Origin: Blastocladiella emersonii ATCC 22665
Taxonomy: Eukaryota; Fungi; Blastocladiomycota
Reading direction: 5' to 3'
Length of the DNA stretch: 64,000 nt
NCBI GenBank assembly: GCA_025594325.1
Contig: JANHCV010000016.1
Coordinates: 186,001-250,000 of the forward strand
Of this stretch, positions 8,652 to 31,890 are shown in pieces (the first letter of the stretch is position 1; the number at the start of each line of letters is the position of its first letter). The translations under genes were made by a program, and so were the position numbers. A model generated the notes under the pieces. That model saw nothing but the letters and a program-made list of their open reading frames with translations. It had not been told where the DNA came from and did not search any database.

Positions 8652-10228
8652 ATGAACGAAGCCCTTGACCCTCTCCCGCGGCCACTGTGCGCCTGCGCCG
8701 AGTGCAATGCATCAACTTCATCCGCAACCCTGCCCACCACGCACGCGCGCGGCCTCGCGCTCGATGTGCGCCCCGCGACCGCCCCACTGGTCCCCGCGTC
8801 CTCGCTCGCGCGCCCGTCGCACCATGCGCTGTGGTTCCTGGACCTGAGCCGGCAGCGGCTGACGTCGCTGACGCAACGGCACTCGTCGTCGGCCGCGCGC
8901 CTGCTGCCCGGCGCGCTCGGCCTGCTGAACCTCGCGCACAACCGGCTCGGCGTGTCCGAGATCCAGCGCGCGCTCGCGGGCGTCGACGCCGTGCTACACC
9001 TGGTCGTGACGGGCAACCCGGCGTGCGTCGGGCTCGGCCTCGAGAACCCCGTCTCGCAGCGGCTGCGCGTCCCGCTCTCGACGCCTGCGCCCGCGACCGC
9101 CGCCCTCGCGCCCGCCGACGCGCGCGCAGTCCTCGTGTGTGTCCTGCCGCAGGTATGGTGCCTCGACTTTGCCTTCATCACCGCCGCCGAGGACCGCGCC
9201 GCGCGCGAGACGGTCCGCGCCCGCATGCCTGCGACCGCGCTCGTCGTGTTCGCGAGCCACGCCCTCGTCACCACGCGCGAGGAGCGCGACCGCGCGCTCC
9301 GGCTCGCGACCGAGGACGCGTCGTGGAGCAAGTGGGGACGCACCCTGCTCCGCCACGTGCCCAAGGCCGCGGCGCTCGCGCCGAGCGGTGGCGGGAACGG
9401 GCTCGGTGCTGCCATGTGGTGGCAGCTGCACACGCTCGCGCGCGACTGGGACGCGGATATTGGGCACCGCAGCACCGTCCACGGCGGCGGCGCTGACGAG
9501 GACGCGGTCCCGCTCGACGCGCTCGGCCGGTGGGCGCCGCAGCTCATGGACAACCCGCGCGCCGCCGTCGTCCTCATCATGGCCGCGCTCCTGCTCGTCG
9601 ACCCACGCTTCCCGCACTGCCTCGTCCACCCGAGCCTGCCGACGCTATGGGCCGTGCTCGGGAACGGACCGCGCCGCGTCGAGCTGCCGTCGGCCGACGT
9701 CGTCGTCGCGCTCCCGCCGCTCAACGTGCTCAAGCTCGCCACCGTGATTCTCGGCGCCATGGAGCTCGAGCAAGGTACTCTCTTCACTCACTCGAGTCTG
9801 TGGATCGCAAACTCACAACCGCGTCGCTTCGCGTAGTCAAGACGTCCGTCTACGACCCGACGCTCCTCGCCTCGCTGCGGCGACACCTCGCATACCTGTC
9901 GTGGTCAGTCCCGACCCCGCCGCCGCCCAACCCGCCGCTCGCCGCGCCCGCGCCGAGCCGCCGCGTCACGCTCGAACTCATCATGACGTGCGCATCCGCC
10001 ACCGCCGACTGGGCCGTCCTCGAGCACCGCCCGTGGCTCGCCTACCTCGCCGCGCACCCGCGCACGCCGAGTCTCGAGTCCGCGCCGCCCGAGGCACGCG
10101 TGCCGAACGCAGCTGTCGCGGCGGACCGGCTCACGGACCCGAAAACGGCGCTCGCCGCGGTCGAGGCGCGGTTCGCGCTGGCGAGCACGGTCGAGGAGGC
10201 TATGGTGCGTGAGGAGGTTTCAATATAG
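8652..10228 (+). CDS. Hypothetical protein with N-terminal leucine-rich repeats
   Basis: LxxLDLSxQxLTSL, LxLLNLAHNRL and LHLVVTGNP LRR motifs. GTACTC...TAG intron near 9774-9836. The 3' end abuts the AT-richer accessory zone and may be truncated (possible GTGCGT donor at about 10204). Confidence 0.55.
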
Positions 10229-10389
10229 ACGCAGGTTCGCAGCGATAGGGCTCATCGGGCATGTGCACGAGGGTACTCCTGTGCGGGTGGTTGGAAATGT
10301 ACAAAGCACGGCCATGAACAGAGAGACCAGCCCCACGATGGCGCTTTCATTTGAAGGAAGTGTGTATAATCACGCGATTATGTCGGCGC

Positions 10390-10490
10390 CTAGCTTCCTC
10401 GATAATAATAAAGCGTATCGAAGGAAACGGGGCACTGGTTGCCGATTTTGATCGTCACGTCGTACAAGTTTGTTGCTTCAGCGACAAGGG
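10390..10490 (-). pseudogene. 3' part of a degenerate gene whose 5' part lies at 22834-23399
   Basis: Reading ...LAL|VAEATNLYDVTIKIG... across the AAGGG TSD joins it to the right flank of the composite. The joined peptide resembles the ORF at 31367-31690. Confidence 0.35.
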
Positions 10491-10664
10491 TGTCACGGTT
10501 CAGTGATCCGACGGCTCGGGCTGGTGGCGCGGGCTGGTGGCGCAGTCCCTCATAAGCCGAGCGTTGCCCTCGCTCTCCCTCTCTCTTGTCATTCGTGATA
10601 CAATCCTTCATTATCCGGCTAGTCATTCCTTGTGGCGCAAGACCCTCCCCCTCGGCACCTTACA
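10491..10664 (+). mobile_element. Isolated 174-bp LTR (TG...CA) of the Ty3/Gypsy element at 17539-22833
   Basis: Differs from each of the other two LTRs at only 2 of 174 positions. Left flank AAGGG, right flank ACGAC, so it has no TSD of its own. Confidence 0.97.
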
Positions 10665-10742
10665 ACGACCACCACCACCACCACCACCTCGACGACCGAG
10701 ACCACCTCAACCACCGAAGCTGTCGCCGCCAAGGAGGAGTAA
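10665..10742 (+). pseudogene. Displaced C-terminal codons of the reticulon gene (TTTTTTTTSTTETTSTTEAVAAKEE*)
   Basis: Begins with the ACGAC TSD and continues the Thr repeat of 16839-17538 in the same frame to TAA at 10740-10742. Confidence 0.85.
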
Positions 10743-11969
10743 ATGCAGTACTGAGACCCCAAGTTTGGGAGCCCGCGTGCGTACGGTGTGCGTGCAGTGT
10801 GCGCCTCCACTTCCCTGCCGTGGAAGTGGCTGGCCGCCCACTCGCTCGCGCGCGCGTCGCGTCGCTCCGCGTCTTGATATCCCCCAATCATCGTCAACGT
10901 TCTGTATTGCGAAACGACGGCGAGACAAGGCGAAACGACGGCGAGATGAGGCGCGGGCCGGTGACTGATGGAGAGAGCGAGCGGAGGGGGCGACGAGGCC
11001 GGGGTTTTGAGGCGGGCGTGGCCGGCGAGTTGTCGCCAGTGTCTCAAAATGATGATGGCCAAGGTCGATGCCGCCCGCGCGTCCAGGTCCGGGCGCACCG
11101 CCGTGAGTCAGCGGCGGCGGCGACGCGGCAGTGACGCGCGCCTGCCGAGGGAAGGTGTGACCCGAATGGGAATCAGCAGCGGCGGCGAGAACGCGCGGCG
11201 ATGAATACCGCGCCCCAGCGACACCGCGCTCTGTCGCGCGACGCGCGTGATGCTCGGGTCACGCGCGCGCGCGCCGCTGATCCCCGCGTGATCCCCCACG
11301 CCGCGGACACGGCCGTCCGCGCCCGTCCGCCGCTGGTGACTCGCCGCCCATTTCTCCGTCGCCCTCAAAAGGTGGCCGCGCCCCTGCCGCAGACGTGAGC
11401 TCTCTTTGAGCTCACGTTCCGTTACCACCAGGTGAGTGCGGCCCCTTTACCTTTCCTTTCCCTCTCGTTTCCCCCTCGGTTTGTCCCCCTCGTTCCTCTG
11501 TAATCGAAGCTCACGTTCCGTTATCACTAGTTGTATCAGTCTACGTACACGGGCTTCCTGCCTAGAACGCCGTTTCCCCCGCAGCGCTCTTCAGCTCCGG
11601 CCGGAATCGGCGGCAACACCGCGCTTCAATGGGAATCGGCTGCGACACCACGCACCGGCAACAACGCGCGTTGACACCGCGCACTGGCAAGAACGCGCGG
11701 CGACACCGCGCACCGGTGGGAATCAGCGGCGGCGGCGGCAACGTGGTGGGCATGGGCCAGCCCAGCTGGCCGAGGGAAGGTGCGACCCGAGCGAGAAAGG
11801 GCGAGCGGTTGGCGCGCGTTATCGGGCAGGCGGACGCAAAGGGCGGAAGGGAACGAGGACGGCGAGGGAGATGAGGAGACCGAGCGCCGCCGAGCCCTCA
11901 AAAGCGGGCCGGACCCCCCGCCCGCCGGCCGCTTGTCAGCACGCACGCAAGCCGCGACCAATCACCCAG

Positions 11970-12861
11970 TCACTCGCGTCCCCATCTCCTCCTCCCACCA
12001 GCCGTGCTCGCTGAGCGTGTTGAGCGGGACCCGCGGAACGACCAGGTCGGGGAGCGCGTCCAAATCGCGACCATTGAGGTCCTCGATTTGGCAAGGATGC
12101 GCACGCTCGAGAAGCTGGCTGCAGAGCGCGTTGGAAGCCGAAACGCGCTCGACTTTAGACGTGAAGTCGCTGAGCGCGTCCTTGGCCGGCTCGCGGACAA
12201 CTGCTTTAAGCGCGTGGTGGCCCTGGTCATGCACAAGCTTGCGAGTGAGCTCAACAATGTTCATTAGATGGTCGACCGCCAGTTTGAGCTGGGTCGCGGG
12301 TTGAACGCACACGCGACCCGCGACAATCAGGTCGACCGCGGCGATGGCAAGGTCGATAACGTAATCGTGCTCCTCGGCCTTGATCACGGCCTGCGGCGAG
12401 TCGCCACGAGGAACCAAGTCGCGCAGAAGCTTGAGGTCAATCAAAAGGGCGTCGCTCGGGTCGGACATATCGTCAGGCCCAGCAACAGCCACGCTACTAC
12501 CATCGTTTACCTTCAAACGCTTGGAAGAAGCCTTGGCTAACCGTTTGTTTGCCTGGCGACGGGCGATCACTTTCTTTGAGTACTCGTCGATGAAGCGGCC
12601 CTTGGGGTACTTCTCCAAGTACGCATAAGCAAGAACGGCACAGGCCTTGTTTGAAAGCGTTTGGAGGCTGTAAGGAGTGAGCCCGCGCAATCCGCCAATC
12701 GGAGAACTGTTCAGCCGCTCGAGTTCACGATGCATCGAGTCGCGGGTGTGTGAGAGCAGCGCGACATGGTCGCTCGGCTGGGTAGCGCCGTCCACGGCGT
12801 CACCGGCCGGTACATGAGATTTCGACGCATCGTTTGCATGGGGTTCCATTTGTTTTATCAT
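11970..12861 (-). CDS. Hypothetical protein (cargo)
   Basis: 299-aa ORF with protein-like composition and no recognised domain. May be decaying. Confidence 0.4.
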
Positions 12862-13106
12862 GGTGGATTAAGTGCACGGGTGGGTTACTGTCGGGGTCGG
12901 GTCGCTCTCGCACCGTGAGCGAGGGACAGAGACGCGGCTCCGCGATCTGGCGCCACAGCGCTCGCGTCATGTGACGGCGTCCGCTCACAATTTCCGTGGC
13001 CAGCCCGCTCTTCATCACTCCGTTCGGGTGTCACTGTGCGGGGCTCTGCCCAAGTGCCCCTCTCGCCGCGATCATTTGGCGCAACGGACGCGATCAAGTC
13101 AAGGGA

Positions 13107-13739
13107 TCAACAAAGCGACACTGTATATACATGCAACGACATGAAACTCTCGATCGACTCTGAACAAACTACTGCGGCGGCGGACGCGCGCGACGACTTG
13201 AGCTCCTTCTCGATCTTGATGAGCGCGTCGTGCGCGTCGCGGAGAAAGTAGCCGGCGATGATCTTGCACTTGGCGTCGCGCACCACGCCGCGGTCCGAGA
13301 GCGCGAGCGTGCACGGGTCCACGAACGCGGGGCACGGCAGGTCGACGATGCGGTACTGCTCCTTGAGCTTCTCGGGCAGCTCGGGCGGGAACCGCAGCAC
13401 GCGGTCCATGGCGGCCCACGGGAAGTCGTCGATGGCGACGCGGACGATCTTGGCGCCGATGAACATCATGCCCGTCACGATGCACGCGCGGCCCGAGTGC
13501 TCCATCTTGTCCTTGCGCGCCTCGCGGAATCCGCTGGTGCAGCGGTCGTCGGGCGAGATCATGGTGATGCGCGGGTTGGTGCTCAGGTCATCGAGCTTCT
13601 CGGGGGCGAGGTAGCGGGCGTCGGCGGTCGCGGCCGTGGCGGCCTTGTCGGCCTCGACGCGCTCGCGCTCAGTCGCGCGGCGGTCGGCCTGCGCAAGACG
13701 GCGGCTTTCGTCGTAGGAGGTACTCTCGTCGGTCGTCAT
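13107..13739 (-). CDS. Hypothetical protein (cargo)
   Basis: 210-aa ORF with strong GC3 bias from 13739 to about 13190. No recognised domain. Confidence 0.5.
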   Translation of the reverse strand: MTTDESTSYDESRRLAQADRRATERERVEADKAATAATADARYLAPEKLDDLSTNPRITMISPDDRCTSGFREARKDKMEHSGRACIVTGMMFIGAKIVRVAIDDFPWAAMDRVLRFPPELPEKLKEQYRIVDLPCPAFVDPCTLALSDRGVVRDAKCKIIAGYFLRDAHDALIKIEKELKSSRASAAAVVCSESIESFMSLHVYTVSLC

Positions 13740-13825
13740 TTTCTGAACACGCGCTTGCGCACGCTTGGTGTTGGTTGCAGCGGGTGCTCGAGGCGGATCG
13801 GGCGGCTATACACATGAGCAAGGAA

Positions 13826-14676
13826 TCAGCGAGTCTCTTGTTGTGCAGACCAATCGATCACACGCACCAGCGTGACAGGAACGGCATAGGGGCCAGCGCC
13901 CTCGTAGAAGTTGCGCGTCACTATCGCGTCGACGGGCGCGTGCGCCGCGTACGGCTCGTGCAGGTTGGTTCGAGGCGCGGGTGCAGCGACAGATGGTTGT
14001 AGAACAGGGAGCGAGTGCGTGACGGCAGGCGCGGGCGCGGGCGCGGGCGGAGCGGATTGCTGGACTGCTGGGGCGCACGCAGGCGCAGATGGGAGAGTGT
14101 GCGAGGCGGAGAGCGAGAGTGGAAGCGCGACAAGTGGTGCGGGCGTGGCGGGGAGCGGGAGCGCGACAGCGGGAGCGAGCGCCAAGTGTGGAGGGCGAGC
14201 TGTGACAGGCGCGGGCGCAGCGCGTAGTGGATAAGTCGCAGCCGGTGCGGGCGCAGCAGGTGGCGGGAGCGCAACAGGCGGCGCGGTCGCGGCAGATGGT
14301 GCGTGCGTCGCGGCGGCAGGCGGACCCCAGATGCGGGCGAGCTGGTAAGCATGCGGGAACTCGTGTCGACGAAGACGCGCTGCTCCTCGTTCAGCGAGGA
14401 CCGATCACGGAGGGCGTCGGCGGTGATGCCCAGCACGTTGGTCTGCAGCAGGTCGTTAAAGCTCTCCTTGAGCTTGTTGACCTTTCGCTCAATGGTGGTG
14501 GTCGCGATAGCGGACGCAGAACCCAAAGCGGACACCCGTTGAGGAAGATGAGCTTGCGCATCCAGAAGAGCTTTTCGTCGAGCGCCGCGTGCGCTGAAGG
14601 TCGTGTAGTTGTCGCCGGAGCACAGCCAGTTGACGAGGCGCGAGGTTTTGTTGGCCGACCAGCGTGGCGCGGCCAT
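13826..14676 (-). CDS. Putative Myb/SANT-like (trihelix) protein with a Pro/Ala-rich tail (cargo)
   Basis: The N-terminus WSANKTSRLVNWL...NY...IERKVNKLKESF fits a trihelix pattern. It probably splices (ACCAG acceptor) into the PA-rich frame of ORF 13826..14185. Exon limits are uncertain. Confidence 0.35.
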
Positions 14677-14908
14677 GGTGGAGCGGGAGCGGTTGCGCGG
14701 AGTCGAGTATCAGATGATGTTGATGCGTTGCGGTATGATGTATGGACGGGAGCAAAATAGCGAGAGCAGACGAGGAGCAACAAGAAAGCAGGCTCGCGAC
14801 GCGCCACGGGGAGTGCGGGGCCTGCACGCTGCCCGCCGCCTCCCTCCCCTCCTCCTCTTCCCTCTGCGAAGCAGTCGGTTCCTGCTGCCCACGCCGATAC
14901 ACCCCACC

Positions 14909-16731
14909 ATGTCCGTCGTTGGTATTGATTTCGGTAACCTGCAGACGTGCATTGCCGTCGCCCGCAGCCGCGGCATCAACATCATCTGCAAGGAGGTGTC
15001 AAACCGCTTCACCCCGTACGCTCCTGCCGCCAGCGTCCTCGCACCAATCCGGTCCGCCCGCTGACCCCCGGCCCCATGCACGCCGCCCGTCTAGCTCGCT
15101 CGTTGGCTTCGGCCCCAAGTCGCGCCACCTCGGCAAGGGCGCCGCGACGCTGCACGTGTCGAACCTGAAGAACACGGTCAGCTCGCTCAAGCGCCTGGTT
15201 GGCCGCCCCGCGACGGACGCGACGCTCGCCAAGGAGCGCGAGTACACAATGGCCAACATGGTCGCGTCAGACCCGTCCGTGTCGCCATCGGGCGAGATTG
15301 GCGTGCAGGTGCAGTACCTCGGCGAGGAGCGCACCTTCTTGGCGACCCAGTGCGCCGCCATGTACCTCGGCAAGATCAAGCAGATCACCAAGCACGAGCT
15401 CAAGGCGCCTGTCTCGGACGTGGTCGTGTCAGTCCCCGTGTGGTTCTCACCTGCCCAGCGCCAGGCCATGATCGAGTCGTGCAAGATTGCCAGCCTCAAC
15501 CCGCTGCGCATCATCAACAACACCACTGCTGCGGCCCTCGCCTACGGCATCACCAAGACGGACCTGCCCGAGGAGAAGGAGTACCCACACAAGGTCGTCT
15601 TCGTTGACATTGGCCACTTGTCAACCTCAATTGCCGCCGTTGCCTTCGTCAAGGGCAAGCTGCAGGTCGAGGCCACCACCGCCGACCCCTTCCTCAGCGG
15701 CCGCGACCTCGACCAGCTCCTCATCAACCACTTTGTGGCCGAGTTCAAGGAGAAGTACAAGTTCAACCTCGCCCAGCACCCCAAGCCCCTCTTCTGCCTG
15801 CGCGCCGCTATTGACAAGCTCAAGAAGGTGCTGTTGTCCAACTTGCAGGCCCCGCTCAACATCGAGGCGCTGTTCGAGGACCGCGATGTGTCGTCCATGA
15901 TCACCCGCGACGAGTTCGAGAAGTACGCCGAGCCCTTCACCTTGCACATTGCGCCCATGATCTGCAACGTGCTCTACCAGGCCGGCTGGACCAGGGAGGA
16001 GGTGTTCTGCATTGAGACGGTGGGCAGAACCACCTGCGTCCCCGCAATCCGCAAGGCCATCATCAAGTACTTTGAGCGCGACCTGCTCTTGTTCACCATC
16101 AACCAGGACGAGGCCGTGGCCTGCGGGTGCGCCCTCATGTGTGCCATCATCTTGCCCGCGTTCTGCGTGCACAAGTTTGAGATCAAGGACGTGTCGGCGT
16201 ACAATGCGACTGTGTTGTGGATGCAGCACGCCAAGGCAGGCGCCGGCGACGAGGCCAAGCAGCTGACCATGTTTGAGAAGGGCGCCGTGGTGCCTGCGAC
16301 CAAGGTGCTGACTTTCTACTGCAAGCCCAAGCAGCTGTTCAAGTTCGAGGCCAACCTTGACGCCAAGGCGACGCCGCCCGCGACGCAGGGCGCCACCTTC
16401 CTCAGCCGCCACACCATCACCAAGGTGCCTGTCGGGTTGACTGAGAACCCCAAGGAGCTCACCACGCTCAAGGTGTGCGTGCACATGAACCCTAACCACA
16501 TGGTGTCAGTTGAGTCGGCCCACACCCTGGTCGAGGACAACACCCCCGAGGAGCCCGCAGCCAAGGGCAACGCGCCCGCTGCGTCCGAGGAGCCGCCCAA
16601 GAAGAAGCACAAGGAGGTCAAGGTGAGGGTGGTCTTGTTGGAGCCCGGCCTTGCCAAGACGGTGGTGCAAGACCTCAAGGAGGTGGAGAACTCAATGGCG
16701 TTGTCAGACCGCCTGGTGTTCAACACGGAGG
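14909..16731 (+). pseudogene. SSE1: Hsp110/SSE-family Hsp70, 3'-truncated and CpG-hypermutated copy
   Basis: MSVVGIDFGN, NRFTP|SLVGFG (intron 15016-15094), VFVDIGH, LNIE, NQDEAVA. It ends at ...LVFNTE G|GTACGC and the C-terminal helical lid is absent. Many conserved residues are altered by C>T or G>A changes at CpG. Confidence 0.88.
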
Positions 16732-16838
16732 GTACGCTCTGTTGTCACTGCGCCGCGTTGCTGCGCGTGCGTTCGCCTGACTGATCCTCTCAAGAACATG
16801 ACACTAACGCACTCACCCGCTCCGCTCCGCACTTGCAG

Positions 16839-17538
16839 AGGATGCGACCCTCCTCAACCCCTACTTCGAGACGGCATGCGACCTGACGCTGTGGCACAAG
16901 CCCGTCATCTCGGGCAGCGTGTTTGCCGGGTCCGTGGTCGGCGTGCTGGTGGCGCGCTACTACTCAGGCGACCTGCTGCGCATCATTCTTGGCCTCGCCT
17001 TTGGCGCCGTGCTGCTCAACCTTGCGTACACGCTCGTGTCCAAGGTGATGGCCAAGGCCATGGGCACAGCGGCACCGCTGCCGTTGGCGTCGCGCGCGCT
17101 GTCCAAGGCGCGCATCAAGATCACCGAGGACCAGGTCCGCCACGTGTTGATGGTCGCCGTGGCGGTTGCCAACCGTGGGCTCAAGACGGCTGCCGCCCTT
17201 GTCCTTGTTGAGGACATTGCCCAGTCAGCGCTCGCCCTCATTGCCCTGTACTTTGCCTGGACCATGGCCACATATCTGTTGACGTCAACGCTCGTCCTGA
17301 TTGCCCTTGTCCTCGCCTTCGCCATCCCCGTTGCCTACGACCACAACTGCAAGCTCATTGACACCCAGCGCGCCATCCTTGCCAAGGTCGCCAACCAGAA
17401 GCTCGGCCTTGTCCTCGAGCAGACCCGCTTGATCCGCGCGACCATCAACGCCAAGGTCAAGTCGGCTAACAGCGCTTCGGCTGCCGCAGTTGCCACCGAG
17501 TCTACCACCGAGTCATCAACCACCACCACCACCACGAC
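16839..17538 (+). pseudogene. Reticulon (RTN homology domain) main exon, cut by the 5' LTR inside a Thr repeat
   Basis: DLTLWHKPVISGSVF, two long hydrophobic stretches, and a ..AIPVAYDHN.KLID motif. Preceded by CTAAC...TTGCAG. The ORF now terminates 16 nt into the LTR (TGA ending at 17554). Confidence 0.8.
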
Positions 17539-17714
17539 TGTCACGGTTCAGTGATCTGACGGCTCGGGCTGGTGGCGCGGGCTGGTGGCGCAGTCCCTCA
17601 TAAGCCGAGCGTTGCCCTTGCTCTCCCTCTCTCTTGTCATTCGTGATACAATCCTTCATTATCCGGCTAGTCATTCCTTGTGGCGCAAGACCCTCCCCCT
17701 CGGCACCTTACACT

Positions 17715-17723
17715 TTGTATCAC
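17715..17723 (+). promoter_or_regulatory. Candidate self-priming primer-binding site
   Basis: TTGTATCAC, 2 nt after the 5' LTR, is the exact reverse complement of GTGATACAA in the LTR (17643-17651). There is no TGG-type tRNA PBS. Confidence 0.6.
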
Positions 17724-17766
17724 TGTAAAACCCCCTCCGAGCGGTGATTTCTTCCACGACGGCAAG

Positions 17767-18847
17767 ATGATAACGCCGGCACAGTTCCTCGAAAAGCTGG
17801 CGACGTTTGACGTTGCGGCCATCGTCCCCAAGTACCAACCAGCTCGCGCCGTGGCGCGACCTGGTCATGCCGTACGAGGACAAAGCCAAGCTCGTCTTCC
17901 TCGCGCTCAACGTCGCCAGCGACTACTGGCAACTGGGCGTGTCGACCGAGGCCCGCGCGGTCGCGGCCGAGCGGCGCGCCGAGACGGCGGAGCGCCGCGC
18001 GTATGCGCTCGAGGTCGAGCTGCGGCAGACGCAGCAGAGCCAGCCGCTCAACGGTATCCTGCAAGGCGAGCTCGACAGCATCCAGGTCAGCAGCGCGCGC
18101 GGGCCGGGCGTGGGCGTTGATGGCTTCACGCCGGCCGCGATGCACGCGCTGATGCGCATGAATTCGGTTGACGGCGTCAACTTCAAGGTCAAGAGCGCCA
18201 TCGCGCAGTACGAGAGCATCCTCCAGCTCACGTTCAACGTCCCGGAGAAGTTCAAGATTGCGCACTTCCACGGCAAGCTGATGGGCAAGGTGCTCAAGGC
18301 CGTGGAGCTGGCGATGGCCGGGTCCAAGTTCGAGGACTACGGCTCGTTCAACGCCTACATCTCCCTCGTCAAGTCGACGCAGCCGGCCGAGAAGTCGGAG
18401 ACCGAGTACGCGCACAAGCTCAAGAACCTCAAGTACGTGCGCGGCGCCATGCCGGCGCGCGATTTCGTCTCCAAGTTCCGCCAGACCGCGTCCGGTGCAG
18501 GCTACCGCGCGCTCAGCGAGCTGGCGATGCAGTTCTACCTGTTGGTCACGGCCGGCAACTCGCCGCTGGCCGCGGACGTGGCCTTCGCCTCGCTGCGCAA
18601 GTGCTACCGTTTCGACAAGATGGTCGAGCACTTCCTGGTGCACGAGGGCGGGGCGGCGGGCGTCGCGGCCGAGCTCGTCCCGGACCCGGACGCCATGGAC
18701 GTTGGCGCGATTCGGCAGCGGGCGGCGGCGCACCAGGGCCGCGCCCTCACCAACATCAAGTGCTACAACTGCGAGGGCTACGGCCACAAGGCGGCTGATT
18801 GCCCGTCGCCCCCGCGCTCGTCGTCGGGAAACGCCAGTCGGGCGTAG
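17767..18847 (+). CDS. gag: Gag with zinc knuckle; apparent +1 frameshift near 17835-17845
   Basis: CYNCEGYGHKAADC knuckle before TAG at 18845-18847. The first ATG (17767) is in a different frame from the main ORF, whose first in-frame ATG is 17867. Confidence 0.85.
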
Positions 18848-21800
18848 CGGAGCAGGCCGCGACGTCCTCGAAGCCAAAACCTGCGGATTTGGGTGGTACA
18901 ACGGCGATGGCCACGGCGGCCGCCGCCGCGGACAAGATGTCGGTGCCCGCCGACAAGAAGAAAAAAATGAACAAAAACAAGAAACAAAACATGAATGATA
19001 AGAAGACTAATGGAAAATCTGTTGCTGCGTACTTTGGTGCACTTGTGCGTCTAGAGATGGCGCAGGACCACCTGCACCTCGGCGGGCTCCTCGCGCATCC
19101 AGGGCTCCGCACGGCGCCGATCCCGACGTTCATGATGCTCGACACGGGCGCGCCGGTTAACCTGATCAGCCGCAGGGTGGCCGAGCAGGCCGGGCTCGTG
19201 CCGAAGCGCCTAGCGCGTCGCATCGACCTCCGCGGTGTCGTCGGGTCCGCGCCGGGCCAGCGCCAGTACATCTCGCATTACGTGCACGCGGCCGTGTCCG
19301 TCACGTCGCCCGAGTTCCTGCACGCGGCGGTCGCGGGATCCCAAACCGTGTTCGCGGACGGCGTCGTGCCTCCCGGCGACGCGTCCAAGCAGAAGCGCGT
19401 GGTGGGAGACGCGGGTCGCGCCATCGACATTCCGTGCCTTCATTGCTCGGTCGCGCGCTTCCTCGTCGTCGACTCTCCCGCGTTTCCGGTGATCATGGGA
19501 CTCGAATGGATGGTCGCGAACGGCGCGAAGCCGGATCCGCGCTCGGCCACGGTCGCGATTGACGGCGCGTGCACTGGTCGCTGCGGGTGCCCGCCCGCCC
19601 AGCGCGTCACGGTGGCCACGGTCGCACCGCGCGTCGACCTCGACCCGCTCGCGTGGGACGAGGCGCACGGCCCGCCCGAGGCGCCAGATGACGCGGCGCC
19701 GAAGCGCGTGCTGCCCGCCAAGTACCTCAAGTGGGCGCACGTCTTCGATGCCGCCGCGGCGTCCGCGCTCCCGCCGCACCGACCGTACGACTGCGAGATC
19801 GAGCTCGTCGAGGGCGCCAAGGTGCCGTTCCTGCCCGTCTACGCCCTGTCGCAGCCCGAACTCGAGGAGCTGCGCAAGACCATCGACGAGAACCTCGCGC
19901 GCGGCTTCATCCGCCCATCGCGGTCGCCAGCCGGCGCGCCGATCATGTTCGTGCCCAAGAAGGACGGGTCGCGCCGCATGTGTGTGGACTACCGCCGCCT
20001 CAACGCGCTGACGGTCAAGAACCGCTACGCGCTGCCGCTCATCGCGGAGCTCATGAACCAAGTGCAGGGCGCGCGCATCTTCACCAAGTTCGACCTGCGC
20101 GGCGCGTACAACCTGGTCCGCATCCGCGAGGGCGACGAGTGGAAGACGGCGATCCGCACGCGCTACGGACATTATGAATGGATGGTGATGCCGTTCGGGC
20201 TGACCAGCGCGCCGGCCGCGTTCCAGGCGTTTGTCAACGACGTGTTCCGCGACCTGCTCGACCGCCGCGGCGTTCTCGTGTACCTGGACGACATCCTCAT
20301 CTTCAGCGAGGACCCCGAAGAGCACACGGCGCTCGTCAAGGAGGTGCTGCAGCGGCTCGCCGACAACAAGCTGTACGTCAAGCTCGAGAAGTGCGAATTC
20401 GACGTGACGCGCGTCGAGTACCTCGGCCACATCCTGACCACCGAGGGCGCCGAGATGGACCCGGCCAAGGTCCGCGCCGTGACCGAGTGGCCCGCGCCAC
20501 GGACGGTCAAGGAGGTGCAGGCGTTCCTGGGCCTCGCCAACTACTACCGCCGCTTCATCCCCGAGTTCTCGGAACTGACCATCCCGCTCACCCGTCTTAC
20601 GCAGAAGGACACGCCGTGGCGGTGGGGCGACACCGAGGCGGCGGCCTTCGCGGCCATCAAGACGCGGTTCGCGTCCGACCAGTTCCTCGCGCACCCCGAC
20701 CCCTCAAAACCGTTCATTGTCGAGGCCGACGCGTCCAACTTCGCCATTGGGTGCGTCCTGTCGCAGGTCGACTACGAGGGCACGCTGCGGCCGGTAGCGT
20801 TCCACTCGCGCGCGCTCAAGGCGGCGGAGCTGAATTATCCCATCTTGGATAAGGAGCTGCTCTCCATCAAGGTCGCGTTCGAGATCTGGCGCCACCACCT
20901 CGAGGGCGCGCAGCACCCGGTCGAGGTGTACACGGACCACAAGAACCTCGAGCACTTTCGCACCATGACGGTCGAGTCGCAGCGGCACGCGCGGTGGGCA
21001 CTGTTCCTCGAGCGGTTTTCGTTCCGGTTCACGTACCGGCCCGGCGCAATCAACGGGCGCGCCGACGCGCTGTCGCGCCGCGCCGACTACGAGCTGTTTG
21101 ACAACCCGATGCTCGGCCGCGCTGTCGTTCCCGCGTCGGCGCTCACGGTGGCCGCCACGGCCGCGGCCAGCGCGCCGCTCGTCGCGGGCACGCAGGGCGA
21201 CGACGTGCTCGCCGCGATTCGGGACGGCCTGGCGGAGGACGAGCTCGCGCAGTCGATGCAGCGGAACCCGGGCAAGCACCCGTCGCTCACCATGGACCTC
21301 GACGGCTTCGTTTGGCGAGACGACCGGCTGTACGTACCGTCGGGCGTCGCGCGCACCCGGGTGATCGAGGAGGCGCACGCGACGCGTGTAGCCGGTCATT
21401 TCGGCGTCCAGCGCACCATCGAGAAGGTGTCGCGCTCGTACTGGTGGCCCGGGATGCGCAATGTGATCGAGCGGTTCGTCAAGTCGTGCCTCACCTGCGC
21501 GCGGGCCAAGGTGCCGCGCCACCGGCCTGACGGCGAGCTGCAGCCGCTGCCCACGCCGCCGCGGCCATGGTCGTCGATCTCCATGGACTTCATCACGGAC
21601 CTGCCGCGCAGCAAGGGTCACACCTGCATCATGGTCGTCGTCGATCGGTTCTCCAAGATGACGCACTTCATCCCGCTCGCCGCGCTCCCGACGGCCGCCA
21701 CGACCGCCGACGCCTTCATCGAGCACGTGGTGCGGCCGCACGGGCTGCCCGACGACATCGTCTCGGACCGCGGGTCGCAGTTCACGTCGCGGTTCTGGTC

Positions 21801-22767
21801 GGCCATGTGCGAGTCGCTTGAGATCAAGGCCAAGCTCTCGACGGCGTACCACCCGCAGACCGACGGGCAGACCGAGCGCATGAACCAGACCCTCGAGGTG
21901 TACCTGCGCATGTTCGCCAACGAGGACCAGTCGAACTGGGCCGAGCTGCTGCGGTACGCCGAGATGGCCATCAACAACACGGTCAACGAGTCAACGGGCA
22001 TGTCGCCGTTCAAGGCCAACTACGCGTTTGACCCGCGGCTCTCGGCCGCGCCAGTTCGGTCGGATCGGGTCCCGTCAGCCGCCGCGCTGGCCGAGCGCAT
22101 CGCCGACGTCCAGGGCAAGCTGCGCGAGAAGGTCGAGCGCGCCAAGGAGCTGTACAAGAAGCACGCTGACCGCCGCCGCCGCGAGGGCCCCGACTACAAG
22201 GTCGGCGACATGGTGCTGCTGAGCACCAAGAACCTGCGCGTCAACGTGCCCAAGGCCAAGCTCGGGCCCAAGTACACGGAGCCGCTCAAGATCGTGCGCC
22301 TCATCCGGAAATCGGCCGTCGAGCTCAAGCTGCCGCCGACCATGGCGCGCGTCCATCCCGTGTTCCACGTCTCGCTCATCAAGCCGATCGACGAGCACGA
22401 CGAGGAGGCGTTCCCGGGCCGCGCGCTGCCGCCGCCAACGCCGTACGCCGTCAACGGGCACGAGGAGTGGACGGTCGAGGCGATCCGCGACGCGCGCAAG
22501 GTCGGCCGCAGCGTCGAGTACCTGCTCAAGTGGCACGGCTGCCCCGAGGACGACAACACCTGGGAGCCGTACGCGAACCTCAAGCACCTCGAGCTGCTCG
22601 CCGAGTTCCACGCGCAGAACCCGTCAAAACCCGACCCGCGGAGGGGGAAGGGGAGATGGTGTCACGGTTCAGTGATCCGACGGCTCGGGCTGGTGGCGCG
22701 GGCTGGTGGCGCAGTCCCTCATAAGCCGAGCGTTGCCCTTGCTCTCCCTCTCTCTTGTCATTCGTGA
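18799..22767 (+). CDS. pol: Pol polyprotein: protease, reverse transcriptase, RNase H, integrase, chromodomain
   Basis: LDTGA protease, YLDDILI RT, EADASNFAIG RNase H, HHCC zinc finger plus D,D35E integrase core, and chromodomain EYLLKWHG..DNTWEP. The frame is uninterrupted and reads through the PPT into the 3' LTR. Confidence 0.97.
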   Translation: MPVAPALVVGKRQSGVAEQAATSSKPKPADLGGTTAMATAAAAADKMSVPADKKKKMNKNKKQNMNDKKTNGKSVAAYFGALVRLEMAQDHLHLGGLLAHPGLRTAPIPTFMMLDTGAPVNLISRRVAEQAGLVPKRLARRIDLRGVVGSAPGQRQYISHYVHAAVSVTSPEFLHAAVAGSQTVFADGVVPPGDASKQKRVVGDAGRAIDIPCLHCSVARFLVVDSPAFPVIMGLEWMVANGAKPDPRSATVAIDGACTGRCGCPPAQRVTVATVAPRVDLDPLAWDEAHGPPEAPDDAAPKRVLPAKYLKWAHVFDAAAASALPPHRPYDCEIELVEGAKVPFLPVYALSQPELEELRKTIDENLARGFIRPSRSPAGAPIMFVPKKDGSRRMCVDYRRLNALTVKNRYALPLIAELMNQVQGARIFTKFDLRGAYNLVRIREGDEWKTAIRTRYGHYEWMVMPFGLTSAPAAFQAFVNDVFRDLLDRRGVLVYLDDILIFSEDPEEHTALVKEVLQRLADNKLYVKLEKCEFDVTRVEYLGHILTTEGAEMDPAKVRAVTEWPAPRTVKEVQAFLGLANYYRRFIPEFSELTIPLTRLTQKDTPWRWGDTEAAAFAAIKTRFASDQFLAHPDPSKPFIVEADASNFAIGCVLSQVDYEGTLRPVAFHSRALKAAELNYPILDKELLSIKVAFEIWRHHLEGAQHPVEVYTDHKNLEHFRTMTVESQRHARWALFLERFSFRFTYRPGAINGRADALSRRADYELFDNPMLGRAVVPASALTVAATAAASAPLVAGTQGDDVLAAIRDGLAEDELAQSMQRNPGKHPSLTMDLDGFVWRDDRLYVPSGVARTRVIEEAHATRVAGHFGVQRTIEKVSRSYWWPGMRNVIERFVKSCLTCARAKVPRHRPDGELQPLPTPPRPWSSISMDFITDLPRSKGHTCIMVVVDRFSKMTHFIPLAALPTAATTADAFIEHVVRPHGLPDDIVSDRGSQFTSRFWSAMCESLEIKAKLSTAYHPQTDGQTERMNQTLEVYLRMFANEDQSNWAELLRYAEMAINNTVNESTGMSPFKANYAFDPRLSAAPVRSDRVPSAAALAERIADVQGKLREKVERAKELYKKHADRRRREGPDYKVGDMVLLSTKNLRVNVPKAKLGPKYTEPLKIVRLIRKSAVELKLPPTMARVHPVFHVSLIKPIDEHDEEAFPGRALPPPTPYAVNGHEEWTVEAIRDARKVGRSVEYLLKWHGCPEDDNTWEPYANLKHLELLAEFHAQNPSKPDPRRGKGRWCHGSVIRRLGLVARAGGAVPHKPSVALALPLSCHS
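18826..18867 (+). promoter_or_regulatory. Putative -1 ribosomal frameshift signal joining gag to pol
   Basis: G GGA AAC heptamer in the gag frame, followed 7 nt later by the hairpin GGGCGT-A-GCGG/loop/CCGC-G-ACGTCC. pol is in the -1 frame. Confidence 0.7.
22641..22659 (+). promoter_or_regulatory. Polypurine tract
   Basis: GAGGGGGAAGGGGAGATGG immediately before the TG of the 3' LTR. Confidence 0.9.
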
Positions 22768-22833
22768 TACAATCCTTCATTATCCGGCTAGTCATTCCTC
22801 GTGGCGCAAGACCCTCCCCCTCGGCACCTTACA

Positions 22834-23399
22834 AAGGGCGAGACAGCTGTAATCGTAACTCCTGGAGCCAAGTCCTCGTCGTCCCAGAGGTCGGCACAGC
22901 TCGCCAAGAGCAGGTCGAGTCGAAGCACCATGGCAGCTTGATGGGCACGAATTGCTGCGAGGTCTGCGATCTTGCAGCGTATGTAGCTGGGGGAAGCTGA
23001 GTTGGGAAGACGACCAGCCCCGCGCCTCGAGGCCATTGAAGCATACAACTTGTCAAGCGAGTCCAGGTACTGCCGATTTCGCGTGAGCATGCTCATGGTG
23101 GAGTCGATGCAGCTGAGAACGCGGCGGGCCAGGTTGTAAGTCCTGACACGAGCGTCATCGTCAACCGTGGCCACAGGGAAGCTGAACAGCGACAAATCGA
23201 TTCGGGCGAGAAATGTCGCCAACAGTCCGCTGCCCTCACAGTAATCGAACTGCTCAGCGATAGCGAGAAACTTGGCTGTGGGAGAGGGAAAAACTTTGGG
23301 TTGAAAGCCGTCTACGACGTCGCGAACCTTGAGGGCCAACAAGAGGTCGACCGGAAGACCACAGGCGGTTAATTCCCTGCGACGCTCAGCAGCTCTCAT
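22834..23399 (-). pseudogene. 5' part of a degenerate gene interrupted by the LTR composite
   Basis: ORF 22788..23399 runs into the 3' LTR. Its ...IRAHQAAMVLRLDLLLASCADLWDDEDL segment resembles ORF 31367..31690. Confidence 0.45.
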
Positions 23400-23599
23400 C
23401 GCCGAAACGGCTCCCAGCTTGAGGGGCCTGGCGTCACGCCTGACGTCAGGTCCGACGCGTGGGTCGCGACGCGACGGCTGACGCCAGGGTCAAAATGTTT
23501 TTCATCAGGTCTGGCGTCAGACCACGCAGAAATCGTCAGCCGTGACGCCAGGCCTGACGCAACGGTTGATGCGAGGGTCGGTGCCTGGTTCGCGCCACG

Positions 23600-24750
23600 C
23601 TTCCGGATTGCTCACTTGCTCACCCTGATAGGCATTCCGATAGACCGATTCGAATAATAGCTCTGTATTAATCATGATACGCCGCTGCTCGCGGCCCGAG
23701 CTCTTCCGCGGCCGCCGTCGCCGCCACTCCTTGATGCGCGGGAACGAGTGCTTGAGCTCGGTCTCGATGCCGCCGACCCGTGCCCTCCCGCCCACCTTCG
23801 ACGTGGCAGTCGATCTTGATCGGGCTGAGTGGGTGCGCTTGATGGCCGCGCGGAGGCTGGTGCCCTTGATCTCCTTGAGTGACGCGATCTCGCACTTGGC
23901 GTCGGCGATGGCCACGGTCACCGACCGTCGCAGCGAGTCGAGCTTGGACTTCTGCGCCGCCGAGTGTCGTTGCCCTGGTGCGGAGGGGCGCAAGGTCAGC
24001 GACGCGGAGGGAGAGAGGGGCGGTGCCCGCGAGACGTACCGCGTGGTCCTCGTAGCCGAGGGCGACTTGTCCTTGCACTGCAGCGAGTCGAGGACCTTGG
24101 TCTTGCCGATGTTGGCGCCAGCAAGCTGCCGCTTGATCTGCAGTGAGATGCGTACGTGCGTGTTAGCGAGGGGCTCGAAGCGCGCATCCTAGGCCGCGGA
24201 CCAGGTCGAGAACGCACCGTGATCGAGCATGCCCGAGATCTCGCTGTACTCGACCTCGAACACCTTGGCGGGTGCGAGGAAGTCGATGGCCATGGTCGGG
24301 GCCGTGGTTGACGTTGCTCGAGGTCTTGACGGCCGTCGCGGACGCGTCCTTGGTGACCATGGCGGTGCAGTTGGTGATCGAGTCGATCTCGGCCTTGACG
24401 ACACCATGGGCGCGCGGGCGACGGCGGCCACGATGTCCGAGCGGCGCAGACGCCCACAGCGAGTGAGAAAGCGTACCGCATCGCGGAGCAGCTTGGCGGC
24501 CTTGATTACGGCGACGTGCTCGCAGTGTCGCTACACGGCCGACAACGCGTCAGAAAGCGGGTCGCATTGTGGACGCGGCGATCCACGCGCACACCTCGTT
24601 GAACTCGGCCGTGCACACGCTTGGCGAGGCCCTTGTCGAGCAGCCTGGTCGCGTCGGGAGCTCGACCTTGCGCGCGTCACCGAGGTGGTCGATAGTGTCG
24701 GACGAGGCGCGCTTGGCGCGGGTCAGCACAAGCGCCCGGTGGGTGGAGAT
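23600..24750 (-). pseudogene. Frameshifted, stop-containing accessory gene inside the putative DNA transposon
   Basis: Coding-like minus-strand segments (HGVVKAEIDSITNC..., MAIDFLAPAKVFEVEYSEISG..., ...ASLKEIKGTSLRAAIKR) lie in different frames with internal stops. Confidence 0.3.
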
Positions 24751-25414
24751 CTGAAAACGTGGGGCGACGTGGGGAACAAGTGAGCGGTGTTTGAGCGGCA
24801 CAGCAGGGCGGCGAGTGATTAGGGGGTGATGACGGGCGCAACCAAGCCAATCCGACGCATGGGTCAATCGGCAGCGGTCCCGCGCGTGGCGAGGGCGAAG
24901 GGTGTCGAGGGAAAGGGCGAAAGTGGGGCAGATGAGTCGACGGAAAATGCGCCCTCGCGGCGACTCAGCACGACGCGGATGCACCGCCGCAGAGGCGACG
25001 TACGCCTCCTTGGTGGCCCTGAGCACGTCTCGGGGGTCGGTTCGTCGTCTTAGGCGAGCGTGGAGGCCGCGGACACGACTCGGACCCGGCGAGCGACGCG
25101 GCGAAGGCGGCCTCACGACGCGGGCGCCGCGTTGGCCGGCGCAGTGTGGGCAACATACGGGCGGGGCTGCATGCGATGCCGAGGGGAGTGGTGCGTCAAA
25201 TGCATGGTGATAGAGGGGGTCGCGCGGGGACTTGGCGGGTCGGCGGGAGCGGCAGCCATCCGCGCCCAACGCGCGCGCTGAAGAAGGATCGGCAAAGAAC
25301 GAAAGCGTCACGTGGCGTGACCTTCGCGTCCCTCGCCTCCCTCACCGCTCGACGCACCATGCAAACCCATCTTGCGACTCTATGCAACCGACCTGAAATA
25401 CCGAGCTCTACCTC

Positions 25415-26927: not shown

Positions 26928-27849
26928 CGAGCGCCGTCCCTTGCAGAACTAGCAACGAGAACGAGCTGCGGCGCGTGGCGTGCGCCGCTGGTTGAAATAC
27001 ATGCCCTCGTTCTCTCAACTACCGCGGCGGTGACTTGGCGTGTTTTGCGCCCGCGAACGACCCTTCCTCGAGGTCCGACGACGAGTTGGAGCGCAAAACC
27101 TCTCTTCGCCGCGTCGCCGTCTCCAGTAGTCGCTCATAAACAAGTTGCATCAAGTTGGAGAAGAGTAGGATTCATGGTTCGTGGTCGAGGCATACGTGGC
27201 GGAGAGCCGGGACTCTCGCGTCGCGAACCGGACCCCCACGCGTCAGACCTGGCGTCAGGTCCGGTCGAGGCTGACGCCAGCCCCGACGTGAGATTGGCTG
27301 GGACCACCGCCGACCTGGCGTCAGGGGTCTGGCGTCAGCCCTCGCGTCTCCAGGGCCGTTTCGGCGAGGCTCGCGGCGGCAATGAGCTTCAAAAGAAATA
27401 CATGAGTTGTCAGGCGGAGAGGACAGAGGCTTGTCGCAGAGTCGATCGGCGCCTCGGCCGCGCACGCCCTGGCGGCGCAGCCTGATCACGCTGGTCACGT
27501 GCGTCTGACCAACGCGTACGATCATTCACCTGTGCACGTTTCCTCCTGGCGTTTTTCACCGACTCCGCTAATTTGGACGATGACTTGCACCAATGTTGTG
27601 TTTTTCGGTGAGCGGAAATCCAGTTTAACGGCATTTAAACCATGCGCGCGAGGACCGTCTGACTGCGCACATTATCGGTGGATTGATTACTGATCGAAAA
27701 ATAATAGGATCATATCTTTCTCTAGAATCGAGCAAGGTGTTTTCAACTCAGCCAAAGGATAGTGCACACATCACAGAGAAAATCTGAAGAGTCCAGTCTC
27801 GTCAAGAATCATGTCTAGCAGGAGCAGCGACTCCACATGGAGTGAAAGG

Positions 27850-29120: not shown

Positions 29121-29525
29121 CGATTTGCTGAGCGACATTCTACACGCGTCTGGAAGTTGGCGATTTGCTTCATCGCAGGAACTGTGCGGGCGGAGTGCAG
29201 TGCATACGTTTCGTCGTTATGTGAGGCGACCCAAGGGGCAAACAGCAGTCGCGCGCGGCCGGGTTGACAGCGCACGCGCGCGGGCGGGTCGCGAGCGCTG
29301 GCGCAACGCGTGGCGATCATCGTGTGACCGCACGCCACTTGGAACGCGTCTCGCAGCACGTCTCTAATTGAACGCGAGCGCAAGTCGGCAAACTTGATGC
29401 CGTGATCGTGTTGCGACGCATGCAGTCATAACAGGAGCCGTCCGGGGATCACGGCTTTCTTGGGCGCTGAGAGCAGACACTCTCTGACAGCGTCGAGTAC
29501 AACGAATTCAGGATATGTATCAAAG

Positions 29526-31690: not shown

Positions 31691-31890
31691 CTACTCGGAT
31701 GGTCGTGGCCATGGTCAGAGCTCAAGCGGCAGCTCGATCGTTGAACGGTCGCGGTTCGAAGGCGGGAGTTCTATTAAGAGCGTCGACCTTGATTTTGTCT
31801 CGAGAACGGCGATCCCGGTAACCCGCGAGGAGTCGTCGGCGATGGGACTCGATGTTCGTGATGATCGGGAAATGATCAGTGTGGCGCAAC

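Follow-up and report, generated by a model that had tools for sequence, protein, structure and literature searches.

Introduction

Unequal recombination between LTR retrotransposons in plant genomes gives rise to non-matching target-site duplications and to LTR-int-LTR-int-LTR tandems, and Helitron-like elements (HLE2/Helentron) pick up fragments of genes and transpose through circles. A marker of the HLE2 transposases is the DUF6570 domain (PMC11417382). Yeast, plants and Magnaporthe harbour large numbers of LTR-bearing circles, and it has been proposed that DNA can be moved when such circles re-enter the genome at LTRs. The mechanism itself is not new: for the extrachromosomal circular DNA (eccDNA) of yeast Ty elements, recombination of a genomic solo LTR with an LTR-bearing circle has already been speculated to act as a mover of DNA (Moller et al. 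2015, PMC4751563). Clean genomic footprints of circle re-entry are scarce. In wine yeast, an inserted segment, region B, is circularly permuted, which has been read as the mark of a circular intermediate (Galeote et al. 2011, PMC3053389).

Here we analyse a composite locus of the blastocladiomycete Blastocladiella emersonii ATCC 22665, in which three direct LTRs, designated A, B and C, enclose a cargo (between A and B) and a full retrotransposon (B to C). It shares with the plant products of inter-element recombination the three direct LTRs and the presence of single units without matching flanks, but here the mismatched flanks pair reciprocally and the A-B interval is a host-derived mosaic. 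A tandem LTR-int-LTR-int-LTR array generated by unequal crossing-over was rejected for this locus, since that interval is not element interior. The LTR-bounded eccDNA of yeast (the GAP1 circle and Ty circles; PMC4751563) resembles it in having direct LTRs around a non-TE segment, with exit and re-entry of a circle by LTR-LTR recombination. However, the yeast segment is native chromosome between two independent LTRs with their own matching scars, whereas the Blastocladiella segment, found in a different lineage and associated with a chromovirus, is permuted around a single insertion site and its scars are swapped and nested. Region B (PMC3053389) differs in that it was inserted by non-homologous end joining at repeat-free sites and exists in several permuted copies, whereas the present locus is a single copy whose entry would have been mediated by LTR homology. 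The signature, consisting of a matching outer pair of flanks, a matching inner pair and a permuted cargo, can be searched for genome-wide in long-read assemblies and would thus allow the frequency of this route to be gauged.

Taken as a whole, the locus may represent the footprint of a non-TE segment that moved as a circle with an LTR as homology handle, the circle having perhaps been thrown off by a Helitron-like element with captured fragments, and it may also record a copy-specific hypermutation, C-to-T with a TCG bias, of genes duplicated in a blastocladiomycete; we propose this combined interpretation tentatively.

The locus and its flanking duplications

The window, i.e. the whole stretch of DNA analysed, comprises 64 kb of contig JANHCV010000016.1, and the composite (12,353 bp) corresponds to contig positions 196,486-208,838. 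The assembly was generated from PacBio HiFi reads with a mean length of 10.5 kb and a coverage of ~186x (6.37 Gb over 34.27 Mb) (PMC9730499); its contigs were de-duplicated by hand and polished with Pilon (65-bp reads). The LTRs and outer duplications are as follows (window positions):

10486-10490, plus strand: outer target-site duplication, left copy AAGGG
10491-10664, plus strand: LTR-A, a solo LTR with no primer-binding site (PBS) after it; its three polymorphic CpG sites read C, C, T
17539-17712, plus strand: LTR-B, which bounds the full element on its 5' side; T at all three variant sites
22660-22833, plus strand: LTR-C, which bounds the full element on its 3' side; variant sites read C, T, C
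22834-22838, plus strand: outer target-site duplication, right copy AAGGG

Each LTR is 174 bp long with TG...CA ends. The three copies are 98-99% identical (98.9% between B and C) and differ at three positions only. The order of the flanks, AAGGG-A-ACGAC ... ACGAC-B-gag-pol-C-AAGGG, is exactly that given in the earlier note: the outer flanks match each other and so do the inner ones, while the full element has no matching flanks of its own (ACGAC on the left, AAGGG on the right), each of them pairing only with a flank of LTR-A. Both matches extend over exactly 5 bp, the sixth base being different, and a 5-bp match is expected by chance with a probability of ~0.0015 per pair according to our own arithmetic from this base composition. 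ACGAC sits within an (ACC)n threonine tract, which makes the inner 5-bp identity weaker when taken alone, and the argument for the inner pair consequently rests on the continuity of the reticulon gene described below. From the outer AAGGG pair it follows that the sequences now flanking the composite formerly adjoined each other and that integrase placed an LTR between them. The cargo measures 6874 bp with both ACGAC copies and 6869 bp after removal of the duplicate, so that the lengths previously reported for cargo (6.87 kb) and composite are right. Beyond the composite, the 64-kb window contains no copy of LTR, element or cargo, and the junction ORFs, looked up as exact proteins, gave no match.

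The full-length retrotransposon

Pfam domain matches identify the B-C unit as an intact Ty3/Gypsy chromovirus with the following features:

17715-17723, plus strand: PBS-like 9-mer TTGTATCAC, complementary to LTR positions 105-113
17807-18847, plus strand: gag ORF with a CCHC zinc knuckle (zf-CCHC)
18799-22659, plus strand: pol ORF without interruption, read in the -1 frame with respect to gag
22640-22659, plus strand: polypurine tract adjoining LTR-C

The pol ORF codes for 1287 aa, in which the Pfam domains are arranged in the order protease, RT, RNase H, integrase (H2C2, rve, SH3) and chromodomain, the latter at residues 1224-1272. LTR-B is not followed by a tRNA-type TGG PBS, and the 9-nt PBS-like complement suggests self-priming of the Tf1 type.

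Circular permutation and mosaic structure of the cargo

The cargo consists of the following blocks:

10665-10907, plus strand: reticulon 3' fragment (Y), ~82-85% identical to parent L001 10880-11113
10908-13012, minus strand: block K1, origin unassigned, CpG content normal
13013-13995, minus strand: paralogous fragment of a DUF6570 gene, resembling the 5' region of the P0123 gene
13996-14828, minus strand: block K2, origin unassigned, N-terminal part of the P0122 model
14829-16731, plus strand: Sse1/Hsp110 5' fragment, 92.6-93.2% identical to parent L003 9920-11813 (P0003)
16729-17538, plus strand: reticulon fragment (X), 88-90% identical to L001 10104-10899

The reticulon paralogue on contig 1 (P0001/L001), the C-terminus of which reads ...TTTTSTTEAVAAKEE, aligns co-linearly to 16729-17538 and then to 10665-10907. 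The start of fragment X coincides exactly with the 5' splice site (GTACGC) of intron 1 in the reticulon gene, and its last bases are one inner copy of ACGAC (17534-17538); fragment Y contains the other copy (10665-10669), the last 24 codons ending in ...STTEAVAAKEE* and ~170 bp of 3' flank. The cargo thus begins on the left with the 3' end of the gene and finishes on the right with its 5' part, two pieces that are contiguous in the paralogue. Co-linearity over X and then Y implies that the two ACGAC flanks were once neighbours in one reading frame, and the continuity of this frame from 17538 to 10665 indicates that the cargo is circularly permuted and the inner scar real. The paralogue therefore backs the inner pair independently of the five matching bases.

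This permutation bears on the possibility of an assembly or culture artefact, in which only an LTR or an element would be present at AAGGG and the cargo would have been threaded in from another locus or from an episome. Manual de-duplication and Pilon polishing of the contigs leave some room for such an event. However, a mis-join alone cannot yield a permuted cargo, since each cargo end would in any event have to be joined to an LTR within the reads; in addition, the variants tell the three LTRs apart, and HiFi reads of ~10.5 kb at ~186x span the 174-bp repeats with unique anchors on both sides, which makes a mis-join at these repeats unlikely. We regard an artefactual origin of the composite as highly improbable.

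The cargo had been taken for host DNA with one parent locus. It is instead a mosaic that combines orphan sequence with truncated paralogue fragments from three loci, derived from a reticulon gene, a Helitron-like (DUF6570) gene and Sse1/Hsp110, the last being a 1.9-kb 5' fragment joined to reticulon intron 1. The parent genes are located on contig 1, at ~1.43, 2.71 and 2.84 Mb. Block K1 opens with a 21-bp tandem duplication (10909-10950), and the orphan protein annotated as P0122 takes its C-terminal part from the 299-aa ORF (11962-12861) of this block. In the DUF6570-gene fragment, 13183-13995 is 84.5% identical to L004 9745-10563 and 13013-13068 matches L004 11212-11269; this P0123-like fragment stops just short of the DUF6570 domain, the match lying upstream of it. 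The Sse1 fragment starts 80 bp ahead of its ATG, which lies at 14909 (81 bp of the parent, with a single gap in the alignment), and spans exon 1, the retained intron and exon 2 to codon 581, where it is joined to reticulon X via a 3-bp microhomology, AGG. All block junctions are internal to the cargo, in which at least four blocks join up into a closed ring, and no similarity to the element was found within it.

Intron-containing gene fragments from unlinked loci, chimeric gene models and a block paralogous to a DUF6570-family gene are features that the cargo shares with HLE2/Helentron elements. In contrast to these, neither a DUF6570 nor a RepHel Pfam match was obtained in it, and no convincing Helitron terminus or terminal hairpin could be recognized; the matched 0.8-kb part lies upstream of DUF6570, and membership of this group is putative. 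The proposal that host genes are relocated via circles was overstated, since the coding content of the cargo amounts to a truncated, hypermutated Sse1-reticulon chimera and an orphan/Helitron-related model. The cargo nevertheless illustrates the birth and decay of chimeric genes in an early-diverging fungus, with an Sse1 exon spliced through a reticulon intron.

Both introns, that of Sse1 and intron 1 of reticulon, are kept, and the alignments to the genomic parents are co-linear. These retained introns and the copied upstream region establish capture at the DNA level, as the earlier note had concluded. It had also considered the missing PBS after LTR-A as excluding an RNA route, an argument that does not hold because a read-through transcript likewise sets a 3' LTR beside downstream flank. 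Such a route, similar to retroviral oncogene transduction, would start from an element in the reticulon fragment of a linear chromosomal mosaic. Its read-in transcript (mosaic-LTR-element) would be packaged together with its read-through transcript (element-LTR-downstream flank), one non-homologous template switch would join the two, and integrase would insert the resulting three-LTR cDNA, duplicating AAGGG on the outside. Furthermore, it predicts that LTR-C combines the U3 of A with the R-U5 of B (U3/R border near position 105), which fails at two of the three variant sites, and that a donor copy should persist, of which none is annotated.

Hypermutation of the duplicated genes

The Sse1 and reticulon copies have undergone heavy C-to-T hypermutation specific to CpG (TCG), and the Sse1 fragment is strongly CpG-depleted. 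The C-to-T changes affect CpG in 147 of 160 cases in the Sse1 and reticulon-X fragments, and in 170 of 197 when the four fragments analysed are taken together. The C-to-T direction predominates by 101:13 in Sse1 and by 59:7 in reticulon, from which it follows that only the ectopic copy changed and that the parents were left untouched. Hypermutation is absent from the element interior and the neighbouring cargo blocks are unaffected as well. The contrast between the hypermutated Sse1 and reticulon fragments and the unmutated element interior implies that the mosaic is much older than the element and must have resided in a chromosome.

This pattern in the duplicated copies suggests that a targeted process hypermutates CpG/TCG sites. 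Ascomycete-type RIP, which acts mainly on CpA and mutates both copies, was rejected, as the changes observed here are mainly in CpG and restricted to the ectopic copy. To our knowledge, no RIP-like process has been described in blastocladiomycetes. The RIP-like TCG hypermutation of repeats reported in Pucciniomycotina (Horns et al. 2012, PMC3318451) is similar in that duplicated DNA is affected by C-to-T changes in CpG with a preference for a 5' T; the Blastocladiella pattern differs in being confined to the ectopic copy, in sparing the adjacent element and blocks, and in its lineage, Blastocladiomycota.

Origin of the composite

Element-only crossovers cannot put Y 6.9 kb upstream of X, and a closure junction within the cargo is needed, which requires a circle or a tandem unit. 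We infer that the cargo was self-closed in one of these forms while carrying the element, this being the only way to reconcile the four junctions. In our opinion, the probable event was recombination between a closed molecule of mosaic and element, circle or tandem unit, and an LTR already resident at AAGGG; the two are most simply joined by homologous recombination between LTRs. A member of the chromovirus family would have integrated at AAGGG, between the present positions 10490 and 22834, either as a full copy or leaving a solo LTR. Elsewhere, a second copy of the element would have entered the reticulon piece of an older mosaic of duplicated gene fragments, duplicating ACGAC. Mosaic and element would then have been closed into an extrachromosomal circle of ~12.2 kb (~7 kb with one LTR) or would have formed a tandem unit able to pop out. 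A single homologous crossover between an LTR of the closed molecule and the resident LTR would finally have opened the circle inside the LTR and joined it to the chromosome. The expected product is a solo LTR followed by the permuted mosaic and the full element, with the resident scar outside and the scar of the circle inside.

The earlier note had proposed a circle and an LTR crossover. Self-closure of the cargo, the integrase scar and LTR-LTR recombination as the simplest join are retained from it; insertion of the element into a ready-made circle is not required, as insertion into a chromosomal mosaic followed by circularization would also serve. Against the closed-molecule model, the evidence comes from a single locus, neither a replication origin nor a Helitron terminus could be recognized in the cargo, and the chromosomal origin of the hypermutated mosaic adds an excision step to its history.

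Two other scenarios deal with the same junctions. In the first, there is no free circle, and the element or LTR resident at AAGGG is broken and then repaired by synthesis-dependent or break-induced copying, between LTR homologies, from a tandem donor X-E-Y-...-X-E-Y, where E is the element. It predicts the same junction pattern and permutation as a circle, and the short fragments and the 3-bp Sse1/reticulon microhomology are typical of template-switching repair. However, hypermutation indicates that the joints of the mosaic are old and do not stem from this event, and conservative copying leaves the tandem donor in place, whereas the annotated proteome contains only one Sse1-reticulon chimera, on one contig. 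This single chimera fits a donor that was cut out, and we consider repair by copying unlikely.

In the second, integrase inserts a DNA-level composite at AAGGG, either a linear LTR-cargo-LTR-int-LTR molecule or a circle cut at an LTR-LTR junction. The correct TG...CA termini and the perfect outer 5-bp duplication agree with this, but a prior tandem or circular stage is still needed, and a single insertion ancestral to all three LTRs demands five CpG changes, including two parallel pairs. We know of no reaction by which integrase inserts such composite chromosomal DNA in vivo, and this scenario appears extremely improbable.

The variant states of the LTRs (C,C,T in A; T,T,T in B; C,T,C in C) fit the reciprocal crossover of a closed molecule with a resident LTR plus one CpG-to-TpG change, although only three sites are concerned, all of them CpG/TpG hot spots in a Pilon-polished repeat, and other assignments of the parents fit equally. 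At sites 2 and 3, LTR-A and LTR-C would on this reading be complementary chimeras relative to LTR-B.

Structure of the LTR composite

The sequence analysed was contig JANHCV010000016.1 of the Blastocladiella emersonii ATCC 22665 assembly GCA_025594325.1, with record position 186,001 corresponding to window position 1. Positions 4909-27554 are 100% identical to the locus fetched through the annotated protein P0002. The three-LTR composite described in the earlier note is present in the sequence, and its LTRs and flanks lie where they had been placed:

10491-10664, direct: LTR-A, 174 bp, TG...CA ends
17539-17712, direct: LTR-B, 174 bp, TG...CA ends
22640-22659: polypurine tract
22660-22833, direct: LTR-C, 174 bp, TG...CA ends

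The three LTRs show mismatches at just three positions. Their flanks follow the order AAGGG/LTR-A/ACGAC, ACGAC/LTR-B and LTR-C/AAGGG, every match being exactly five bases long. LTR-B and LTR-C enclose gag (CCHC) and a -1-frame pol, both uninterrupted, the latter with the domain order protease, RT, RNase H, integrase and chromodomain. A tRNA-type primer-binding site (PBS) is absent from the element. A 9-nt stretch at 17715-17723, three bases 3' of LTR-B, is complementary to GTGATACAA at LTR positions 105-113 (e.g. 17643-17651), which suggests Tf1-like self-priming; elements of the Tf1/sushi group are self-priming, and the present element likewise has an LTR-complementary 9-mer in place of the tRNA-type site. 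If this is true, the U3/R border would lie near LTR position 105. No further copy of the LTR, the element or the cargo was found in the window or in the three fetched 21-kb loci.

Composition of the cargo

The DNA between LTR-A and LTR-B had been taken for a contiguous piece of host chromosome with a single parent locus. Neither expectation was borne out: the search found no such locus, and the cargo is instead a ring of blocks with three separate parents on contig 1:

10665-10907: reticulon 3' end
10908-13012: orphan sequence, holding a 299-aa ORF
13013-13995, minus strand: block paralogous to the 5' region of the gene for P0123 (84.5% nucleotide and 72% amino acid identity; compared with 9745-11371 of its locus, L004)
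13996-14828: sequence of unknown origin (K2)
14829-16731: 5' portion (1.9 kb) of an Sse1/Hsp110 gene that keeps its intron and 80 bp of upstream DNA; identity to the complete gene (P0003) 92.6-93.2%
16729-17538: reticulon, beginning at base 1 of intron 1

Contig 1 carries the full Sse1 gene at ~2.71 Mb. The source genes of the fragments are unlinked and occupy different strands, and their flanks have no similarity to the window. The strand differences and dissimilar flanks, along with the abrupt end of homology at the fragment edges, led to the rejection of a fractionated segmental duplication of contig 1. Among 1.84 billion representatives, the 299-aa ORF matched nothing but P0122, the 551-aa model annotated at this very locus.

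P0123 is a stand-alone 362-aa DUF6570 protein encoded at ~1.43 Mb of contig 1, and the cargo block matches its N-terminal part. DUF6570 is reported to mark the Helitron-like transposases of HLE2 (Helentron/Helitron2) (PMC11417382). The paralogous block thus suggests the presence of Helitron-like elements or their relics in the B. emersonii genome, and the cargo as a whole looks like Helitron-type captured junk. A scan of the cargo for Helitron-like termini or hairpins gave nothing convincing, and the putative Helitron link, which consists of one 0.8-kb block in a cargo where that scan found no termini, serves as a lead only.

The Sse1 and reticulon fragments meet at 16729-16731 in a 3-bp microhomology, AGG, exactly at the 5' splice site (GTACGC) of reticulon intron 1. 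Because of this position, the NCBI gene model P0002 (14909-17551) is a spliced Sse1-reticulon chimera of 819 aa with Hsp70 and reticulon domains, terminating 16 nt into LTR-B. That the joint falls on the very first nucleotide of the intron is a striking coincidence, which might point to a splicing intermediate as template or to selection favouring a fusion that can be spliced.

Two smaller features lie at other block borders. A 21-bp unit, GCGAAACGACGGCGAGACAAG, is tandemly duplicated at 10909-10950, right where reticulon homology gives way to orphan sequence, and could be a trace of repair where two pieces of the mosaic were joined. An inverted repeat of 16 nt without mismatches (14711-14726 and 14973-14988) spans the K2/Sse1 border; it was rejected as a fold-back relic, since it is isolated and became perfect only when the copy later underwent a CpG-to-CpA change, and is probably due to chance.

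Circular permutation of the cargo

When the reticulon-like ORF ending at 17538 was used as a query, it had one relative, Reticulon-4 (P0001), encoded on contig 1 of the same strain. The C-terminus of P0001 reads ...SSTTTTTTTTTTSTTEAVAAKEE. In the window, its threonine run halts at the ACGAC/LTR-B junction, and the remainder, ...TTSTTEAVAAKEE and the stop codon, comes after LTR-A/ACGAC. At the DNA level, positions 10104-10899 of the reticulon parent locus match window 16729-17538 (fragment X), and positions 10880-11113 match 10665-10907 (fragment Y). Consequently, the inner flanks were once neighbours within a single reading frame, and this is the point around which the cargo has been circularly permuted. 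The inner ACGAC pair is a real insertion scar. Since ACGAC sits within an (ACC)n tract, its 5-bp identity is weak evidence by itself, and the continuity of the gene is the stronger argument. The segment from LTR-A to LTR-B was also considered as a LARD-type non-autonomous LTR element and rejected, as its edges carry no PBS or polypurine tract and are the two halves of one gene.

Exact junctions at LTR ends are either made by integrase or inherited via recombination inside an LTR. Read in this way, the outer AAGGG pair marks the integration of an element at a time when 10490 and 22834 adjoined each other, and the inner pair marks an integration into the reticulon fragment. Flanks can be exchanged by crossovers between elements, but such crossovers cannot run downstream flank Y, over 6.9 kb, into upstream flank X. 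For this order the cargo has to contain a joint at which it was closed; provided that the assembly is correct, we infer that the LTR-bearing cargo must have existed as a circle or as a tandem unit. A single crossover between an LTR on such a closed molecule and a resident LTR would yield exactly the order and the scar pattern seen. Either partner could have carried the full element, which could have entered the mosaic before or after closure. Copying from a tandem donor, with no free circle, would give the same product as re-entry of a circle; however, the donor should then remain, and the proteome contains just one Sse1-reticulon chimera. Integrase might also have acted on the composite as DNA, for which we know of no precedent.

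An RNA route, by read-in or read-through transduction, would directly explain the outer scar. The earlier note had dismissed it because the cargo keeps its introns and LTR-A is not followed by a PBS; the missing PBS, however, is compatible with such transduction. The RNA route is nevertheless disfavoured by the retention of two introns, the absence of any poly(A) remnant at 10907/8, the long template that it would require and an LTR pattern that departs from prediction at two of the three variable sites. The states at these sites are C,C,T in LTR-A, T,T,T in LTR-B and C,T,C in LTR-C. They are compatible with reciprocal exchange plus one more CpG change, under either assignment of the partners, and models with no exchange fit worse, although this is weak evidence, as all three sites are hot spots and the repeat was Pilon-polished.

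The B. emersonii genome was assembled from HiFi reads with a mean length of 10.5 kb at ~186x coverage (PMC9730499), which makes an assembly artefact unlikely; moreover, the permutation cannot arise from a mis-join. Exact-protein look-ups toward Logan or Illumina assemblies with the ORF at the LTR-C/right-flank junction and one cargo ORF gave no match.

In yeast, the formation of LTR-bounded circles by LTR recombination is established, and Moller et al. explicitly speculated that DNA could be moved when a Ty circle recombines with a solo LTR (PMC4751563). Galeote et al. argued for a circular intermediate from the circularly permuted order of an inserted segment (PMC3053389). The present locus unites both signatures and adds another insertion scar, which marks the circle. 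It belongs to a distant fungal lineage, and its cargo resembles junk captured by a Helitron.

Hypermutation and age of the mosaic

The ectopic Sse1 and reticulon copies (14829-17538, also 10665-10907) carry C-to-T changes that are one-sided, strand-symmetric and almost wholly at CpG. In the Sse1 fragment, compared with 9920-11813 of its parent locus, 101 of 129 differences are from parental C/G to T/A, 96 of these 101 at CpG; in reticulon X the same holds for 59 of 81 differences (51 of 59 at CpG). Changes in the reverse direction number 13 and 7, respectively. Approximately 18-20% of CpG cytosines were changed, against ~1% of other cytosines, with a 5'-neighbour preference for TCG (34%) over CCG (21%), ACG (12%) and GCG (8%). 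Among 1-kb windows across the 64 kb (median CpG observed/expected 1.30), only the Sse1 and reticulon X blocks fall below 1.05, whereas the other cargo blocks, the flanks and the element interior (1.35) are normal. Hypermutation has spared the parent genes, the cargo blocks next to these copies and the interior of the retrotransposon. This pattern resembles that of a RIP-like or 5mC-deamination process directed at a duplicated segment in a blastocladiomycete. The mosaic must have resided in a chromosome during its hypermutation.

The uncorrected divergence between mosaic and parents (7-15%) was rejected as a clock, as CpG hypermutation accounts for 75% of the differences in Sse1 and 63% in reticulon X. 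The non-CpG divergence of the Sse1 copy is only ~1.7%, and the differences among the three LTRs are all at CpG/TpG sites; the mosaic thus predates the insertion of the element, without being ancient.

Right flank

The right flank (~22,800-32,000) has a GC content of 58-65%, whereas the rest of the window is at ~70%. Among its ORFs, only a BMT5-like rRNA methyltransferase gene at 29866-30765 gave a Pfam match. An unannotated 187-aa ORF on the minus strand (22839-23399) reaches the AAGGG site; with the composite removed, it would stop 10 codons inside the left flank.
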